Assembly (NCBI GenBank): GCA_965637545.1
Contig: OZ281501.1
Location: 8,370,001-8,434,000, forward strand
Direction of reading: 5' to 3'
DNA: 64,000 nucleotides
DNA from: Phallusia mammillata
Lineage: Eukaryota
Of the stretch, positions 382 to 11,423 are shown piece after piece. Each line of letters opens with the position of its first letter. The stretch's first letter is position 1. Made by a program: the position numbers and the translations under genes. The notes beneath the pieces were generated by a model. The model searched no databases. It was not told the origin of the DNA and saw nothing but the letters and a program-made list of their open reading frames with translations.

Positions 382-3300
382 TTATACCTCTTTAATCAAC
401 TTTTTGGCTACAGGACGAACCAAGGCCTCAAGCAGCACACTTTCCACTTTTTTCTTTACTTCCACAGGCTTTGCAAATTCAACATCATTCCTTTGCAAGA
501 TCTGTGGAACAATCTGGTCCTCTATATCAGATTCATATTCGTCTAGCTCTTGAATGTTGATTTTTTCTTGCTGAACAATAGGAGGGGGGATTTGGCCCAT
601 TACTGGGACATCGAAATTCTCAGCTTCTGTTAACTTGGGTTCCACTGAATGTGGTATTAAGTTGTCCAAGTCAGCATCATCTTGTAGTTTAGCTAATACA
701 GTTTCTGTTCCTGCTTCAGACAAAAAACTTTCATCAGTTGGGATTGCATTTCGTTGAACATTTTTTGTTAATTCTCCATGAGAAAGATTTGGGTTTAAAT
801 ACTGTTGATCTGAATTGTCCCGGTTTTTCAAAGTAATGTTTTTAAAAACACGAGGAAGCAAAATTGGTATTTCTTGAGAATGATTTTGAGCTACAGGATT
901 AGTAACTGGTGTAAGAGCAGAAATTTTATTGGCAGGTAGTTCCACCAGGTCAGATTCTGTTTCAAGATCTTTGTTTTCTAAAACTTGACTTGCATTTTGG
1001 GTTTCATTTGCTACTTCCGTGTGATTGGAAACAGCAGATTTGTGTGATTCAATTTCTGACTCTTCGGTAACTTGCTTTGTGGATAAAAAATCAGAATGGA
1101 ATTTTAAAAACAAGTTGAACTTAATGATTGACAATTTAAAGCACTACCAGTGTGTAATTAAAAAATGTAACAATTCTTCCTAAAACTCCTTAATTTTTTT
1201 TTTAATTTCATTTAAATTTAACAAAAAAAGTCATTTCGTGTATTTTTTACTGAGAAAAAACAAGATGGCTGTATTTACCTTTTTATCATCTTCGGTTAAA
1301 CTGACGTTGAAGTTTAAGTAATCCAGGGCCACATTGATCTGGGAGTACCTTGTGATGAGATATTGTGCAACATTGTTTTCTATCCATACCCTGTCAGCAG
1401 CGTAACAACTTGGACACATATCCATCGGTGGAAACTGGAGTTTTGGAAAAGCTGGGTCTTCTGTTGATGAGTTGGAATGTAACCTGCGGCAAAACTGATT
1501 TTTAAACATACAGATATTTCACATCAAGGATACGAAACACTGTAATGAGGAAAAGGGGCCTACAACACATAAGACATTGTTCAAAAATCACAGGTCAAAT
1601 CATCACAGGTGTATAACTGCAGTACTTACAATCTACTTCAATCAACAGATAAAATAGAGTTTGACTAGGGATTTAATTGAATTTGTACTTTTAAAGTACA
1701 AACATAGCTTTGAAGTACAAACATTGCCAACATGGATACCTTTCATTGACACTGTTGTGAATTCTCCATAACCACAGAACAGCACTGTAAGGACCAGTTG
1801 AACTGTTGTATGGCATTTGCTTAATTTCCTTCATGAAGTTAATCCGACATTCTCGGCAACCAAAGAAGTTTGTTATGTAAGCTGCCATAGCATTTGGAAC
1901 CAAACTTTGATCTGAAAAAAAGAATAGACTAAAAATTATGTTCCTATTTTTCCAGAAGACATTTATATTTCCTAAACACTTTGACGCATCTCATCTTTGT
2001 TCCAAAAATCAATAAAAAGGCTTTAGCCTGACCACTTATTAAAATTGTGAAGTTGAAATACTTGTTTAGGATGTCTGTAGAGCAGGGGTGGACAACCTTC
2101 TTTAAAGCTTGTGTGGCCCGCAGAGACGCTTGGATTTCAAAAGTACTGGCAAACGAGTCCAATTATTACATATTTTTGAGCTGAATAATGCGCCTGATGC
2201 TAGTTTTCTGCGATCTGGCAAAATGTGGCTAGAATCAAATACGAACTAGAATAGTGGTTTTCCTATATATTGCCAGTTTATATATACTACATCATATTTA
2301 ACGATGTATCACATATACCATTTACTATATTTATAATGGATATATATTTGGCATTGGGTCCCTATCTTTTTCCTGGCACTTTATAACATGATTGTTTCTG
2401 CAAGCATAATCTAATGGGTCCCCACACATATGCATATGCGATTTGGTATCAGTAAAAATAGGGCACAATCATTGTCAGATATTTACAATTTACTATACAC
2501 ATCATTTGATCTACACATATGATTTTTTTGCAAGCAAAAACGAATGGGTCCCCACACGCGCGTTTGTGCGGATTTATGGTAAACAAACATCCTGGTTATT
2601 TTTAGATTCTTAAGGAAAAACTTAACCAACTTTAGCAATAACCCAACTTTAAAAGTTTTGTCCGTATTCTTTTTGCATCATTATTGTCATATAATTACAA
2701 AAAACAGTAAATAAGAACAGGAAAAATACTTTCAATTTAATCTCATGCTTTGACCTTGATATTGTCGTTCAAGATCAGTTTTTAAACACAATTTTCCAAA
2801 ACTGAAAATGAGCTTAAAAACTTAATAAAACGAGATGGCATGGCTGCGCAAAAACAGCTGATTTCTAATCACCAACACGACTGTCTCGTAAAATGTCCGT
2901 CCGGACGTCAAGCTGAGCACTCCCGCTGTATTCACTAGGGATGTGCTAAAATTGCAAATGTTCTGTTTGGTCGAGCACCGAGCATCTCACGGCCGAGCAC
3001 GCTCGGTGCATTATGACATCACAGAAAATCCCCTTTCTATGTTTTAGCTCTACAAGGCCTCTTACGTCACAAGCGGTGTATTAAGCTGCACAGGCCTCAG
3101 AAGTACACGTTTTTCCACAATCTAATACATTTGAAAAATCATTTGTTTTTGTTCATAGACACCCTTTCGAACACTAGTTACCTATGTTAGCAGGGCATGA
3201 ATATGCAAATTTAATGCTCGGGTCAGTTTGTGCAACTGCTCGGCCGAGCACCGAGCACCGAGCATCAAAAATAGCGATGCTCGGTGCCGAGTACTCGGGT

Positions 3301-6300
3301 TCTGGCTCGGCTCGGCGCATCCCTAGTATTCACCGCCTTAATCGTAAACAAGTGAATTACTACCTTGAGATTTGAGACTTCTATTTAACTGACAGTGTAC
3401 ACATGTTATGGACGTAAAAGTAACTATTTGGCCGATTAAGGCAATTTTTTAAATACTGAATGAATAACCTACTGCAAACAATTGTTTAACATTTCAGCAC
3501 ATTGGGGCTTGTATTTCTGGCCTAAAACTTATTATTTGGGGGTTTAAGGGGTAAACATGGGTGAATCCAATAAAAAGTTACAAAATTCTTTAGAATAGCT
3601 TACATTGCACCAACCAACAAAGCATGAAACCCACAGATTATTGCTTGGGTCAGTACAGCCGTTTTTAATTTTTTTCGTTTTGGGGGCCTGTGGGTGAACT
3701 GCTGGGTCGTTTGGGGTCAAACTTCAGGAGGATCAAATTCGGAACAATAACTAACATCTGTGCAAATTTGAATACATTTAAAGCACTCTTTTTTGACCAA
3801 ACACATTTAACAAACCAGCGTTAGACAGAAACGAATATTTTGGGGTTTAAGGGGTGAAAATGGGTAAATCTTTTTTTAAGGTGCAAAATTCTTTGAAATA
3901 CTTTATATTGCACCAAACAACAAAGCATATAACTCCTAAATGAAGTACTTTAGCAAGTATAGCTGTTTTAAAAATTTCACGTTTTGGGGGGCTGTGGGTG
4001 AACCGAGGGATCAAACGGGGTCAAAATTCACATGGACCATCTTTAGACCAATATCTATAATGTGTGTAAATTTAAAAAAGTTTGAACCATTCTTTCTTGA
4101 CCAAAACGTGGGAACAAATCCGTGTTAGAAAGAAAAAAATATATAGACAAAAACAATATGTGTCCCCTTCAGGGAAGGGGACCCATAATTATACTTGTAG
4201 TTAAGCAAATTTGGTAAGAAACAAAGCAAAATCACTTTGTGTGATGCACATGTGTGGCCTTCGATCCAATTTTGACATTTATAATTGGGCCTACAGTAAC
4301 AAAGGTTGCCCACCCCTAACAGGGAGGATTGCTGATTATACACGACATATTTAACACTGAACAATAGAAAGCAAATAGAAACAGAAAATTCCTTACCAGG
4401 AAGTTGGGCATTGACAGAAGCAACAGACATTGTGTGAAACAGGGTCCATAATGAACATGGATATCGCCGCAAACTTGGCTTGCTGGGTTGACATCCAACC
4501 CAAAGTTTGTTGGATGGTGGCAAATATTGATCTTTCTGCCGATATGAAAAAAACTCAATTAGAAATGGTTACCATTGAAAGTATCCTATATCCTTTTGAC
4601 TTCAACATACCAACTAAATAACATCTAGTTGGAAGTCTGTATATTTTTGTCACAAATTGAAATTGAGAACTGATGACAATTGAGAACTGATGACAACTCT
4701 TAAACAATATACTAAATTTAAATTCATTTTGACATGAGAAAGATTTACCCAGGCCTATGAAAGGTCATAAGCACCATACTGTAAAAATTTGCTGTGTTTT
4801 TAATAATGCCTACCTTCTTTTGGACAATTTTCTCCATCCAAGCATTGTAGCTTATGGTGTCTTGAGTTTGAAGCCAACTGTATAGATCACTCATAAATGC
4901 ATGGGTGCTTGCACGTGCTGGCATATGCTCTCCAAGCTAAACATAAAAGGTCAAAAATGTCACATACTTTTACTTAAAATGTGCACTTAAAGTTTGGTAC
5001 CTAGTAAAAATAAGAGTTGTAAAGAAGATAAAGACAATAGATTCAGCATTTTTTATGTACACACCTTTACAAATGCAGATATAAACGTTTTTAGGCCTTC
5101 TAGTTTCTTTCCTTCAAGAACTTTGACAGCTGCAACTTCCATAGTCAGAGCATAGCGGATAGCAGACTCAATATCAGCAAGATATACTTTGTCCCTACAA
5201 AAAATGTCCACAATTACATTCAATACATGAAGATCTAATTTAACAACTTCATTTAAGCTAAACAAGTATCATTTTTTATGAAAACAAACATATTTGCTTG
5301 CCTTTTAACACCCCTGTAGTCAACTGTAACTTGATTAACATTATTATAAGAATCGGATAAGATTTGTGAAAAAGGTGAATTAAATCTTGCAATTGGTTCC
5401 CCAACTCCAGGCAGTCTGGTCAACTTGTAAGTAAAAAAGTGTCTGGTTTTCAGTTTCCTGTAAATAAAAGTAAAAGATAGGAATGAATACAATACAGCAC
5501 TAAGCTAAACAGAAGCAAATTACTATTGCTGCACACAAAATTTTGTACAATGTTTTGCTTTAAAACTTTCCACATTATCGCATTTGGGCTTGACAGGATA
5601 ACAGAAAAATATTTAGTGCATGCACTAAAGCATAAATACAATGCAGATCACAACCAGGATTTAACAGGTGGTTGTAATACATATACAGATATCTATTCTA
5701 TTGGAAACACTATTTACAGATTGTTTAATATTTTCACAAGGCTAGTCCATATTGCACTAAAAAGTAATATCCTTTTTTAGTTTCTTTATGCTGGAATAGT
5801 TTATATGCTAAATCATTTTATAAAACAAAAGCATTGTTTGTATTTTTAAAAGTACCATCGGCTAGTCAGTCAACAATCACAAACCATATTCTTACACTTG
5901 AATATTTTGAATTGTTCCATTCCTGTGAATGACAATGGCTTGTGGAAGATCATTGGTGTCAATACCAAGTTTCATGGCAAGGTCTTCACCATCTTTGCGA
6001 TTCACATTAACTCGTCGGATGAAAATGTTGGTACATGAAGATGTGTCAAGAATTACCTGTAAAATAGGAAAGTTAATTGCATTACTTCACTGATGGGTCA
6101 TTCCATGTCAAACGTCCCAGAAAAATGGCAAAATGTAACCCACCCTCTCAGATTTTTATCAAATTTCATATGTCCATGCAGCTAGTTACACTGATTTCAA
6201 CAACAAAAATTTTTTTGAAATCTATCAATGTTTCACGAAGTTATGACATTTTGAAAATATGTCAAATATGTGATCACTGCAGCGACGCGCATCAATGCTT

Positions 6301-9300
6301 TTTGATAATACTGTGTTTAAAATGTCATATTTCTTTCTAATTTGTATATTGTGGTCATTTTGGTAGGTTAGGTGAACCTTTAGGACATTCTCAATCACCT
6401 CATTACAGTTTTTCATGTTTTTGAAATATGGGTCAGTAATTGAGGGGGGTTCAGTTTGGGGGTATGCGAATGTGCATTCATGCGTAACGACAACTTTAAA
6501 AGCTCATATCTTGAAGAGCACACTAGCTAGAAAGTTAAGTAATGGCTCAAATGAAAGCTCTTGCTGAGTACTTTCCTTGTTCTTAATTTTATGATGCTTC
6601 TCTGTAATTTGTTTAAAGGAGGGTCATAATAAAACACAGGTTCATTTTTCGGATATTTTTGTGATACTGCGTCTGTTATCTATACTTTATGTGCCCTAAT
6701 TTGTTATTAAAAGTTGTTAAGATGCAAAAGTTTAGTGTAGGTGTCTCACTGGATACTGAATGCCACAAAAAGACATATCCAACACAAAAACAAGGTATTT
6801 TACCAATTGACTTTCTAACAGATGAAGAGCAAGTGCTTCTGAATATTCGAGTTACTGCTGATAAGGGTAATGAATGTTGTTTGGAGAACGTATGAATTTT
6901 CCACAGGTACAATTACATTGGTCGGTACCCTTCCTTGCAGAAGAAGTGTTGTAATCCTTTTCGAGTCCACAGTAAACCAGTCAAAAATCGTAATATACGT
7001 CCTATCACTTGGGAATATTACCAAAAATATAAAAATTACAATTTAAACATTGCACCGTGAAAAGGTGTGATTTTCCCTTTTGAGGTAGTCGTTTCTCTTG
7101 ACCAATTGCTTGGGTATCATTGTGGGGACTTGTATTTTTCTGCTATCGTACTGTCACTGTTCCTAATTTTTTTTCATTTTAGAGATAATGTTGTCAAAAG
7201 ATTTTATTTTCATTTTGTCTTCGTCTTTAGTGTCAGGTTGGTCTTGCTATAGGTCTACATCACTGACATTAAAAAAATTGGACATCTTTGCATGAAGGGT
7301 ATCATTAATTTGACATAATTTTCTTTGCCCATAGAAAATGTTACTGCTTGAAGGCACACTATGCAACTTCACAGGTAATCACCTCAACGCTCTGTAAACT
7401 TTCATTAAGCTTGCTGAAAGATGCGTTTGCTTTAACAGTAGATGCAATGTTACATATTTCACTGTCAGTCGAACTCGAAGCTTCTTCATTTGATGATACA
7501 TTTTGAAGGATAGTTTCTTTAAGTCTTGTACTGCATTTGGCACACACCTTTTTTTTCTGGTACAATATTTAAATTACAATTTTTATATTTTGGTAACATT
7601 CCCAAGTGAGTGGACGTATATTACGATTTTTGACTGGTTAACTGTGAACTTGAAAAGGATCACAACACTTCTTCTGCAAGGAAGGGTACCGACCAATGTA
7701 ATTGTACCTGTGGAAAATACATACGTTCTTCAAACAACATTCATTACCCTAATCAGCAGCAACTCAAATATTCAGAAGCACTTGCTCTTCATCTGTTAGA
7801 AAGTCAATTGGTTAAATACCTAGTTTTTGTGTTGGATATGTCTTTTTGTGGCATTCAGTATCCAGTGAGACACCTGCACTACACTTTTGCATCTTAACAA
7901 CTTTTAAAAACAAATTAGGGCACATAAAGTATAGATAATAGAAGCAGTATCACAAAAATATCCGAAAAATGAACCTGTGTTTTATTATGACCCTCCTTTA
8001 AACAAATTACAGAGAAGCATCATAAAATTAAGAACAAGGAAAGTACTCAGCAAGAGCTTTCATTTGAGCCATTACTTAACTTTCTAGCTAGTGTGCTCTT
8101 CAAGATATGAGCTTTTAAAGTTGTCGTTACGCATGAATGCACATTCGCATACCCCCAAACTGAACCCCCTTTAATTACTGACCCATATTTCAAAAACATG
8201 AAAAACTGTAATGAGGTGATTGAGAATGTCCTAAAGGTTCACCTAACCTACTAAAATGACCACAATATACAAATTAGAAAGAAATATGACATTTTAAACA
8301 CAGTATTATCAAAAAGCATTGATGCGCGTCGCTGCAGTGATCACATATTTGACATATTTTCAAAATGTCATAACTTCGTGAAACATTGATAGATTTCAAA
8401 AAATTTTTTTTTTTTGAAATCAGTGTAACTAGCTGCATGGACATATGAAATTTGATAAAAATCTGAGGGGGTGGGTTATATGGCCTGGGCAGTTGACATG
8501 GAATGACCCTGATGAAATGGCATCACAAATCCTTCAGCATTATGCAAACTGGAAGTGTGAACAATTGACAAACAGGATATATGCGTAAACTGGGCGTAGT
8601 TTAAAAACTAATTCAAATCACTTCCATGTAGCAAACTCAGTATGAACAAATTGTCCAAATTTGTCAAAGATCCAGATTAACTGATGTCAATTAGTAAAAG
8701 TCTTTCCACATTACACATTATTTGTACTTTAAATTTTGTTCAAATTAGGCAAAGATCCGGATTAACTGAATGTGGTTTACCCAAGGTTCACTGTACTACA
8801 CAAGTCCAAGGGTACTGAACAGAGAAAATATGCTTAATACTTTCTTAAGTGAAAATCTAATTAGATTTTGTATTAATACAAGAACAAAAGTAAACCAAAG
8901 AAAATTTTTACCTCTCTTCCAATATACGAATTCTCATCTTCAAATATAACAGCTGTGTATAAGATAGGTTCAGAGCTTGGAGCTGGAGAAAGATCATTCA
9001 TCACCTCTTCTGACCTAAAATACAAAATATGTGTTAAGCACCATGCTTAAAAATAGAAATACATAAATATATTAAAATGTAACGTACCCAGAGACTCTGA
9101 GAATTGGTTTCGGTCTTTCATGAGTCCATTTAAGATCACTGATGTGTTTTGCAATGTAATCAATAATCTCTCTCCTTATTTCATTCATTCCTTGGTCACC
9201 TTAATGAACATACAACGTGTAGAAACAAACATTGTAAGAAGTTTAATTTTAACTGTGAGTAATGTGTTTTAAAAAAGCATATTGCACTAATACAAGTTAT

Positions 9301-11423
9301 AGAACCACTCTAACTCACACTTGTATAATATTTATTGCGTCAATTTTTTTTTAGTTGATTTAATCTTAATAAAAGACTTGTACCTTTGTAAGTTTCTCCA
9401 GGATTACTGACATTAGAAAAAGCTGGATAAAACTGGAAAATATGAATAAAAAGTATTGAAGTATTAAAAGCAGAAAAGTATAAACCAGAAGATAATTTGG
9501 TTCCCAAAACAAAAGGCACATTCCAATCAAACAATAAGTTAACCCAAAACTTCTCAGTTGAAAGTTCCAATTAATCATTGGTAAAACAACACATATTTTT
9601 TTTTCAAATTTAGAGGTTCTCTGTTTAGAAATGAAATTTTACTAATTCAAACAAGCATAAAGATAAACACACAGCAAATTTTCCAAAAATTAATTATTAT
9701 TGCATGCAATTTATTAGTGGAAATTTTGGCAGAAAACATTACTATCTAAAATCCTATTAGGAATCAATGAACATTGTTCCATCACACCAGGTATGTGTAA
9801 ATAAAAGTATTCTGATGATAGAAGTAAATCTTGAAATGATTTACACAGAAACAACATTTAAAACTAAATTGAGACCCTCAAACACTATTTTGCTACAAAG
9901 ACAGACCACCATGTGCTAATGTACCCGAAATTCTGGATAATCATAAACCCAAAATGGATGTCTATGACATGATAAAAAATTCTCGTCACCGCTTGGGGCA
10001 GTGTCACCACAGTTTATTGCTCCAATACGAAACAACCAACTCCATCCTGAATTGCAAGGTAAAAAATTAAAACTTCAAATATTAGAATTATATAAACTTA
10101 AAAAAATTAAGCTTGGGAAAACCATGCATTTCTTACAAGCCAATGCAAACATAATAGAATTTGTTTTAGAAGAATTACATGCACAATTTTCAATCAAGCA
10201 ATTTGGCATTCATAAATCTGTGGCATGCTAACATTACCCGAAGAGTGGGATAGTCAAGAATTGACATATTCCGACATATCTGCACATTCATCGAGTTTGG
10301 ACAATTGATAACACCAACTTTAAGCAGCATGTGCCACTCTGGAAACAGGGACAAGGTTGGGGACACAATTTATGGATTGAAACATTGGTATGCCATTAAT
10401 GAGTTAACAAGTTGTAAATGTTAACATGAGATTAAACATTGTATGGTATACATACATACACTAAGCAGTGGTTACCAGACTTTTTTGATGCAACCCAAAT
10501 ACTTAAGCTAAGTAGTGAGCTGACAAATAGCTTATGGCGTCACAAACAAAGACACTGTTTATCACATTATCACAAGCTAGGATAACGTTATTGTTTCACA
10601 ACAGTTTTGTGAAAAATAAAAACACTAGAAAATACAGATAAAAACAAATTATTTTGTTACAAAAACAGACAACCCAGAAGAAATTTTAGGAGACTCAACT
10701 TTGGGTTGTAACCAATACTTTGAAAAACACTGGTGTAAGGTAGTAATTGGGTGCAGAAAGGAAACGGATGTAATATTGTCAAAGTTTCTCTAAATGATTT
10801 TTATAAATTTCACAGATAGGTCTACTTGCTTAACTCAATGTTTGGTTGTGGAAATACTTGAAGTAAGACGATACAACAAACACCATACCTGCCACATCCT
10901 TTGCCAATGCCTTAAAAATAGGTGCAAATTCTTGACAATGCCCACACCATGATGAGTAATACTCAACTAACCAGAGAGTTTGACTGCAACAAACAAAAAG
11001 TCAGAAGAAGAAAATGTATAATCAAGCCAAGTCAGAGGTTCTAATGCTAAATTATACTACATACGGGTATTGGTATTTATATGCCTAATTTGTCATGCAT
11101 TAGCACATTAAATGTTGTTTAGGCTTTAGTATCCCATGTTAATGTATAAAGCCTCTGAATGGCTAATAAAAGGTTTATATGGCTATAGTAATGCTTGATA
11201 CTTTTGGATTTTAAAGAGATTTTTATCATATCATAAAATAGTGGTATAAAGCAGATGCAAAAAATGTATAAAACCTGGTTGATAGGGTCTTCAACAAGTT
11301 GTCCCCATTAAAAATGGTCACGTTATCTTTTTCATCATAAAGCCCTTTTTCAACTGCTGCATCAGATGTCACACATTGAATATAGTACACTATAATTAGC
11401 ATCAAACAACTCCTAATAAGCAT
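382..11423 (-). CDS. QSOX: Quiescin sulfhydryl oxidase (Trx1-Trx2-HRR-Erv), 14 coding exons, about 795 aa using exon 3a
   Basis: Exons (minus strand): 11423-11275, 10983-10889, [10338-10238 or 10046-9925], 9432-9384, 9199-9088, 9014-8912, 6056-5896, 5457-5302, 5194-5065, 4936-4814, 4535-4397, 1911-1740, 1483-1279, 1074-382. Phases are consistent and the total of 2388 nt is divisible by 3. Motifs: signal peptide [20 protein letters not shown], Trx [38 protein letters not shown], Erv [32 protein letters not shown]. The last exon's acceptor (AAG at 1075) and the 3' end are less certain. Confidence 0.95.
2244..4188 (-). mobile_element. Helentron/DINE-1-like non-autonomous element (HINE), copy 1, in a QSOX intron
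   Basis: Plus strand runs AACTAGAATAGTGG...GTCCCCTTC-AGG-GAAGGGGAC-CCATAA: a 9-bp terminal stem, an inverted subTIR ATGGGTCCCC at 2414 and 2544, two internal units of about 300 bp and no TSD. It is co-linear with copy 2. Confidence 0.75.
2936..3325. mobile_element. hAT (Ac-type) MITE nested in HINE copy 1
   Basis: TAGGGATG...CATCCCTA termini, a perfect 8-bp TSD GTATTCAC (2928-2935 and 3326-3333) and subterminal CCGAGCA repeats. An empty site is visible in copy 2. Confidence 0.9.
6095..8509. mobile_element. Non-autonomous foldback DNA transposon with about 970-bp inverted arms (Sola2-like by inference)
   Basis: Termini GGGTCATTCCATGTCAA...TTGACATGGAATGACCC, flanked by an identical 4-bp TGAT (6091-6094 and 8510-8513). 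Arms 6095-7069 and 7543-8509 look about 95% identical in a 90-nt sample. The spacer is 473 bp. Confidence 0.85.
7075..7892 (-). pseudogene. Decayed N-terminal part of a transposase-like ORF (second partial copy at 6722-7060 on +)
   Basis: Consensus of both arms: [19 protein letters not shown]...[31 protein letters not shown]...VPEKKVCAKC. The spacer continues [15 protein letters not shown]...YGQRKL...EKYKS..MIPSNWSRE, with stops and frameshifts. Confidence 0.7.
9925..10046 (-). CDS. QSOX: QSOX alternative exon 3b (phase 1-0, 122 nt): [41 protein letters not shown]
   Basis: Splice sites ttttttaccttgcaattcag|GA...TTTCGG|gtacat. Open only in the needed frame and paralogous to 3a (W...G.INC...C...DYP..R). 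Confidence 0.82.
10238..10338 (-). CDS. QSOX: QSOX alternative exon 3a (phase 1-0, 101 nt): [34 protein letters not shown]
   Basis: Splice sites ccctgtttccag|AG...CTTCGG|gtaatg. Matches the QSOX Trx1 segment with two structural Cys followed by xPTxR. Confidence 0.9.
10466..10732. mobile_element. Degenerate Charlie-like MITE in QSOX intron 2
   Basis: CAGTGGTTACCA...AAAAACACTG ends with subterminal CAACCCAA/TTGGGTTG. No clean TSD. Confidence 0.4.

Follow-up and report, generated by a model that had tools for sequence, protein, structure and literature searches.

We note that a stretch of 64,000 nucleotides (nt) from Phallusia mammillata (contig OZ281501.1 of assembly GCA_965637545.1, positions 8,370,001 to 8,434,000 of the forward strand; hereafter the window, whose own numbering is used below) holds, at 6095-8509, a transposon copy of 2,415 bp whose decayed open reading frame (ORF) opens with a cysteine- and histidine-rich domain shared with the N-terminus of ARL14EP (C11orf46). 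ARL14EP is a conserved partner of SETDB1 with links to the development of the corpus callosum and to loci for polycystic ovary syndrome, and its counterparts are ARLE-14 in C. elegans and CG14464 in Drosophila. There is good support for homology between the ARL14EP N-terminal domain (N-domain) and an accessory domain of animal Sola2 transposases, from which the ARL14EP domain was probably derived; to our knowledge, this has not been described before. A link of this kind had been suggested in an initial annotation of the window, made from its letters alone.

The initial annotation had described an element bounded by terminal inverted repeats (TIRs) and a target-site duplication (TSD), and both are there. 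The perfect 17-nt TIR core, GGGTCATTCCATGTCAA, lies on the plus strand at 6095-6111 and as its reverse complement at 8493-8509; these two copies are the only ones in the window, against 0.19 expected, and both stand at the element's termini, which are also denoted by GGGTCATTCC. Directly outside the two ends TGAT can be read at 6091-6094 and again at 8510-8513, a TSD of 4 bp. Two inverted arms of about 965 nt each, 6095 to about 7063 on the plus strand and about 7552 to 8509 on the minus strand, are 97% identical when one is aligned with the reverse complement of the other, with a single 10-nt indel near the tip, and they enclose a unique middle of 488 nt (7064-7551). The left arm comprises the terminus, an untranslated subterminal region of 627 nt and the first ~112 codons of a transposase. 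In the whole, one 5' end is present twice and in opposite orientations, as copies of 969 and 1,446 nt set head to head, and because the same 5' end has been joined to itself, an identical inverted repeat is found at both termini. No further copy was found in a search of the whole window, and the region analyzed is free of assembly gaps. Long inverted arms are also the mark of the Drosophila Foldback (FB) elements, but FB arms are made of tandem repeats, whereas the arms described here duplicate unique 5' sequence, coding sequence included; Tandem Repeats Finder returned only a 29-nt array of two copies between 5900 and 9000. An FB-type element is ruled out on this ground, and "foldback" refers here to the shape of this copy only.

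The ORF begins with an ATG at 6722 (plus strand) in the left arm and at 7892 (minus strand) in the right. In the left arm it spans the N-domain (6722-7057, recovered by profile matches), with a stop at 6893-6895 inside and another at 7058 at its end; all other copies of the family in the sequencing runs that we compared have T at 6895 (TGT, Cys), so that the inner stop is private to the window copy. The right-arm ORF is longer (7250-7892, minus strand) and takes in the N-domain, a linker and the helical region "PVKLH..YGQRKL", at the cost of four stops and three frameshifts: the stops and two compensating frameshifts lie within the arm, and the remaining frameshift falls near 7378, after the ORF has run on into the middle, where it continues to about 7250 and then, with further stops, to about 7064. 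The peptides quoted in the initial annotation are present. When pieces of the window were compared with a transposase profile of 849 positions built from 36 full-length relatives, they proved colinear with positions 1-108, 110-169, 171-209 and, weakly, 214-237, and the pieces from the middle (7362-7568, E 4e-5; 7250-7378, E 5e-7) carry the right-arm ORF on the minus strand through positions ~110-237, up to the foldback junction. As read from these translated pieces, the window copy keeps only the first ~28% of a transposase of about 860 amino acids (aa), twice over and in decayed form. The catalytic core and the remainder of the protein have no match to the 849-position profile anywhere in the window, which makes the copy a coreless, non-autonomous derivative. 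Other searches with window pieces were likewise negative: Pfam gave no family, a PDB sequence search no match, an ESM Atlas feature search with a 68-aa piece noise only, and a word-index search with a 57-aa piece no match among proteins of 31-100 aa.

Contigs from four public sequencing runs were compared with window 5600-9000. In two DNA runs of the same species, a contig at the depth of the flanks leads from 6095 directly into the right flank and has TGAT only once; other individuals thus carry the empty site, and for this reason the insertion is recent. In the empty-site allele, 8 nt from the insertion point, TTACATC also stands in place of ~29 nt of the window (8522-8550), which may be a haplotype difference or may be insertion-related. 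Inside the element the contig word depth exceeds that of the flanks by a factor of tens to hundreds (a summed figure, and a rough measure only), and the family is highly repeated. The strand-switch joint at 7063/7550 recurs in a contig of another run, and the foldback form is therefore a property of the family, not an assembly artefact. Pieces of the element at 95-99% identity were also found among the runs under a second organism label. In a contig from a probable RNA run, 6052 is directly followed by 8908, and the interval between them, 6053-8907, has CT..AC ends, that is, GT..AG on the minus strand; the element accordingly sits in an intron of a host gene, and ORFs in the window point to a QSOX gene. 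Taken by itself, the window copy is an ordinary decayed non-autonomous transposon.

What such a copy has lost could be read from its relatives. A profile of 59 positions, made from three overlapping pieces of the window and nothing else, found 41 proteins in a library of 1.84 billion representatives, most of them short fragments. One of these matches (P0024, from Styela clava) led to proteins of 840-890 aa, with full-length relatives in Styela, Hydra, Xenia (a soft coral cluster), Artemia, the spider Araneus, the leafhopper Homalodisca, the rotifer Rotaria and a frog. Pfam finds no domain on these full-length transposases, nor a family for the fragments. An AlphaFold model of one of them (P0054; mean predicted local distance difference test, pLDDT, 82.6), taken together with Pfam, Foldseek and the alignment, indicates the domain order N-terminal domain, helical linker, helix-turn-helix (HTH), Cys/His cluster, RNase H-like fold and C-terminal beta domain. 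Three invariant aspartates occupy RNase H positions, where D537 comes after strand 1, D621 ends the next strand of the core and D662 lies on the helix after that, and Foldseek matches the fold to TnsB, IstA, retroviral integrases, Mos1 and RNase H (E 2e-4 to 1e-2). The transposase core that the initial annotation had expected of full-length copies is thus there, although this RNase H-like core with three aspartates (DDD) is seen in the full-length relatives only and not in the window copy. At the other end of the protein, the beta-rich domain at P0054 ~737-850 is conserved across the transposase alignment, and Foldseek matches it to the tandem Agenet domains of a plant H3K9me2 reader (7yta) at a probability of 0.99; on this modelled likeness, it is possible that an Agenet/Tudor-like domain serves as a chromatin-reading module on the transposase.

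Two Sola2 transposases, DFa-2 of Dictyostelium fasciculatum and PPa-1 of Polysphondylium pallidum, are printed in the supplement of a paper which also reports that Sola2 elements make 4-bp TSDs (PMC3627910). The animal proteins are colinear with DFa-2 and PPa-1 through an HTH-like "QIL..SP...FG", "FY", DF.EN, SD.LNH, SDGA..FK and W.F.A..HGKS. Within the animal family the last four motifs read DF.EN, SD.L.H, SDG.A..[FY]K and HGK[SG], with spacings of 47-52/34-36/36 versus 50/36/38 in DFa-2; the four-motif pattern occurs in 0 of 7,200 shuffled sequences, and PPa-1 has close variants of the middle two motifs (SQVLNH and CDNARHFKS). Published Sola2 transposases (Bao et al. 2009; DFa-2, PPa-1) and the animal family have in common a length of ~850-900 aa, near-identical motif spacing and an RNase H-like core with three aspartates, and a 4-bp TSD and short TIRs belong to Sola2 and to the window element alike, in agreement with the superfamily guessed in the initial annotation. 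The animal lineage adds the N-terminal Cys/His and the C-terminal Agenet/Tudor-like domains, both of which the amoebozoan proteins lack, and the window copy departs from Sola2 further as a coreless foldback derivative. For the best explanation taken as a whole, we consider it likely that the element derives from a metazoan cut-and-paste DNA transposon of the Sola2 type, and that it is a foldback-shaped form which is not autonomous.

The N-domain is the part of this transposase that reaches beyond transposons. It measures about 115 aa, and its 7 conserved cysteines and 4 conserved histidines are the same in the transposases and in ARL14EP. When an alignment of 13 full-length transposase N-domains was compared by hhalign with one of 16 non-primate ARL14EP N-domains (no primate or human sequence entered either), the probability was 100 and the E-value 9.8e-42 over 112 of 112-116 columns, with 39% consensus identity, and the identities include positions that are not ligands (LQK.CCDPF..H.K, PG.KLC..C). 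A profile made from ARL14EP only picks out three colinear pieces of the window (E 7.6e-10, 2e-9 and 1.7e-4) among 114 six-frame pieces, so that the resemblance noticed in the initial annotation is not due to chance; in the other direction, the window-only profile matches a true ARL14EP, sturgeon P0032, at E 3.4e-4 in a search of 1.84 billion proteins, and on P0032 Pfam places ARF7EP_C at 3.9e-28. At the level of sequence these comparisons show the window and transposase N-domain to be homologous to the N-terminus of bony-vertebrate ARL14EP. It might be objected that both domains are small and cysteine-rich, that Pfam has a family for neither, and that convergence or a generic Cys/His pattern could produce such a likeness with no common ancestry. 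The hhalign E-value, the reciprocal profile matches and a joint fold of high confidence (bowfin ARL14EP residues 1-126, modelled from the joint alignment: pLDDT 95.3, predicted template modelling score 0.84) already refute that objection, and we give it almost no credence.

Homology of this kind would also be seen if the window feature were a pseudogene, processed or rearranged, of the ARL14EP of the host itself. In favor of that reading there is only the N-domain likeness, and annotation pipelines do name such fragments "ARL14 effector protein(-like)". The window ORF has the whole N-domain of ~115 aa in common with ARL14EP/C11orf46, and every conserved Cys/His position with it, but the ARF7EP_C domain (PF14949) is nowhere in the window (best E 0.32 with a profile of 21 ARL14EP tails against its six-frame translation), and the ORF continues instead as transposase, up to about position 237 of 849. 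It is therefore not an ARL14EP pseudogene, as the initial annotation had argued from the same divergence after the N-domain. The TIRs and TSD that bound it, the empty-site allele and the very high copy number tell against a pseudogene too, as does a comparison of bit scores: for the two larger pieces the transposase profile reaches 41.0 and 26.7 bits versus 30.6 and 14.7 for the ARL14EP profile, and for the third the two are about equal (32.4 versus 31.9 bits). We regard the pseudogene as refuted, with a negligible chance of being right. By shape, the N-domain has matches to cnidarian clusters in the ESM Atlas, of which one carries the automatic name "ARL14 effector protein-like", and an Acipenser ruthenus protein named "ARL14 effector protein" (P0041, RXM94358.1) is an N-terminal transposase fragment without ARF7EP_C. 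That transposase fragments are auto-named after ARL14EP means that annotation pipelines saw the likeness, without interpretation; the entries so named in cnidarians and sturgeon are transposon fragments, and the names are misleading.

The question then becomes which of the two, gene or transposon, had the domain first. In an unrooted tree of 44 N-domains, those of ARL14EP fall into a single clade (97/94), within which the branching agrees with the species tree. Its sister group (96/85) is the transposon lineage P0033+P0015, and the tree contains at least six other lineages from transposons. A contig of the sister lineage (L003) carries a near-full-length transposase, matching profile positions 3-139, 165-554 and 558-841, which has two in-frame stops and is flanked by perfect inverted repeats of at least 60 nt. 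These stops (1175-1177 and 2360-2362; TGA, TAG) are found at the same places in two further contigs, L004 and L005, across three metagenome samples.

A search with sturgeon P0032 returned ARL14EP orthologs, and in that listing the N-domain form occurs in tetrapods, coelacanth, bichir, sturgeon, gar, bowfin, eels, tarpon and an elephantfish. In the entries of cartilaginous fishes the N-terminus is of low complexity, and in a 39-kb shark locus neither the N-domain nor a THAP domain was detected; the representatives of arthropod ARF7EP_C clusters have 106-134 aa and are therefore too short to hold the N-domain. The initial annotation had reasoned that an N-domain ancestral to ARL14EP across bilaterians would mean capture by the transposon from its host, and what was found in the shark locus and in the arthropods is of the opposite kind. 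In bowfin and in a bird the whole N-domain, with its own ATG, is a single exon spliced to two shared ARF7EP_C exons, so that, as in known host-transposase fusions, N-domain and host part are in one conserved transcript, and the ARL14EP N-domains fall into one clade. From the distribution, the shape of the tree and the exon structure we infer that a Sola2 5' ORF fragment was likely captured by the host gene in the bony-vertebrate stem. The capture proposed in the initial annotation is thus favored by all three lines of evidence; its direction is not proven, because the tree is unrooted.

As for what the N-domain does, the N-terminal two-fifths of ARL14EP have no annotated domain and no solved structure, the PDB holding only the tail of the protein (8hfp, residues 186-260), and the N-domain is without a Pfam family. 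Foldseek finds no structural neighbors for it; with VIA the best are ZAD (Z 2.5-3.1) and the P-element THAP (Z 2.4), and in a sequence-profile search of the PDB the best match is again a ZAD, at E 0.12. The C2CH ligand order of THAP does resemble the C..C..C-x2-H in the first half of the N-domain, and in fish ARL14EP isoforms a THAP domain sits at the same position as the N-domain, but the structural scores for THAP and ZAD are below any safe threshold and profiles show no similarity to the THAP of fish ARL14EP. A divergent THAP (PF05485) was rejected as an identity for the N-domain: hhalign against 18 fish ARL14EP THAP domains returned a probability of 0.1%, and Pfam places no THAP on N-domain proteins.

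The fishes offer an unexpected comparison. Teleosts are listed with the ARL14EP tail behind a THAP domain instead of the N-domain, as is isoform X1 in bowfin, gar and arowana; THAP forms are listed only for holosteans and teleosts, and among the entries listed, those of teleosts outside the eels, tarpon, bonefish and bony-tongues have the THAP form only. At the bowfin locus (L001) three THAP exons (2479-4813) lie 5-7 kb upstream, and the N-domain exon (10001-10440) lies in the intron before the shared exons, the two heads giving the proteins P0190 and P0153. A THAP-like tblastn match (E 0.062), located in the bird 1 kb upstream of the exon for the N-domain, in a GC-rich region with stops, was dismissed as spurious. 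THAP is a sequence-specific DNA binder, and its alternation with the N-domain on one and the same SETDB1-binding tail is the best indirect argument that the N-domain recognizes DNA, although it is no proof. That the tail binds SETDB1, as the initial annotation stated, is established (PMC6739341; 8hfp), and a 2026 review gives only this contact between tail and MBD and a proposed role as chromatin mediator.

An explanation that joins these observations would run as follows. The inverted-repeat copy, which inserted recently into the host intron and duplicated TGAT, could be mobilized only by transposase supplied in trans. In the transposase, the N-domain would most likely be a two-zinc domain that recognizes the ends of the element, followed by the HTH, the RNase H-like DDD and the Agenet/Tudor-like domains. 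In the bony-vertebrate stem a 5' fragment of a Sola2 ORF would most likely have been taken into the ARF7EP_C gene as an alternative first coding exon, and an end-recognition module of a transposase would thereby have been joined to a tail that binds the MBD of SETDB1. This leads us to propose, tentatively and with rather less than even confidence, that ARL14EP might be a sequence-specific DNA-binding adaptor, whose Sola2-derived zinc domain would read DNA, originally the ends of Sola2 elements, and whose tail would bring in the SETDB1 MBD. As the initial annotation did, we would further hypothesize that transposon ends are silenced via ARL14EP and SETDB1, an idea to which the alternative THAP head of ray-finned fishes lends some indirect support.

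Several points weigh against this explanation, at one or another of its steps. The Sola2 assignment, although well supported, comes from shared motifs and the 4-bp TSD. An autonomous copy of the exact window subfamily was not recovered, the nearest database relatives being fragments of 84-159 aa, so that the evidence of a core comes from related lineages. The fold of the N-domain has no clear match in the PDB, and DNA binding by it is therefore putative; histone H3 binding has been reported for regions of ARL14EP outside the tail (PMC6739341) and is an alternative role for the N-domain. The gene at the shark locus may be the paralogue ARL14EPL, and the survey of distribution drew on bony vertebrates, cartilaginous fishes and arthropods. 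Finally, amoebozoan Sola2 transposases are without the N-domain, which the transposon lineage must therefore have acquired at some point, and a root placed on the ARL14EP branch of the tree would allow capture from host to transposon. On these last two points one might build the reverse history, with ARL14EP as the outgroup: a Sola2 transposon would have captured the N-domain from the host gene and then spread horizontally among animals. Such a history would have to accommodate the presence of the N-domain in full-length transposases from cnidarians to vertebrates, at ~35-45% identity and in at least six deep lineages, when within ARL14EP it is found in bony vertebrates only, with the negative shark locus and the short arthropod homologs described above. 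It would also leave ARL14EP as sister to one specific transposon lineage, and it sits poorly with the single self-starting exon of ARL14EP, which is what would be expected of a captured, intronless transposon ORF. We therefore judge the reverse history improbable and prefer capture of the transposon's domain by the host gene.

Capture by the host gene would place ARL14EP beside SETMAR, the KRAB-transposase fusions, the THAP-domain genes and CGGBP1, in each of which, as in ARL14EP, an end-recognition module of a transposase has been spliced to a host chromatin effector, and beside which ARL14EP also stands as a single-copy gene kept under purifying selection. It differs from them in its donor, which is Sola2, in a captured domain that has no Pfam family, and in its host part, an ARF7EP_C tail that contacts the SETDB1 MBD directly, where KRAB fusions act through KRAB/KAP1. 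Full-text literature searches found no paper that connects ARL14EP/C11orf46 with a transposase or describes a domestication of Sola2, and the initial annotation, too, had known of none; Kojima 2018 (PMC5753468), as read from the formatting of the table text, apparently leaves Sola2 unmarked where it indicates which superfamilies are traceable in the human genome.

For transposon biology, this would be a domestication whose donor superfamily has no known contribution to vertebrate genes, and two unannotated accessory domains of animal Sola2 transposases are defined along the way. For ARL14EP, an N-region that proves to be a well-folded, transposase-derived zinc domain turns its function into a testable question, for instance through DNA specificity, genomic targets and deletion phenotypes, and the THAP swap in fishes likewise opens this region to direct experiment. 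If the explanation is true, ARL14EP would be the first vertebrate gene part derived from Sola, and it would represent a KRAB-independent route for aiming H3K9 methylation that arose in the ancestor of bony vertebrates and to which ray-finned fishes later added an alternative THAP head. The role reported for ARL14EP in loading SETDB1/MET-2 on chromatin would then also have a concrete mechanism.

Two smaller features of the locus may be added. The motif ATGTCAWA, which was picked post hoc, has four occurrences within the first 235 nt of the left arm (6105-6329: 6105 plus, 6242 minus, 6259 plus and 6322 plus) against 0.1 expected, a count that none of 1000 shuffles reaches; one site lies inside the TIR, and the set is mirrored in the right arm. 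As a lead only, drawn from motif counts, these are candidate binding sites for the transposase. To the right of the element, window 8650-8791 holds a second high-copy repeat, with a depth of ~33,000 versus ~300 in one run, a 34-nt direct repeat (8651/8736) and a strand-switch joint at 8665/8734 in reads; it is probably a small element resembling a miniature inverted-repeat transposable element.

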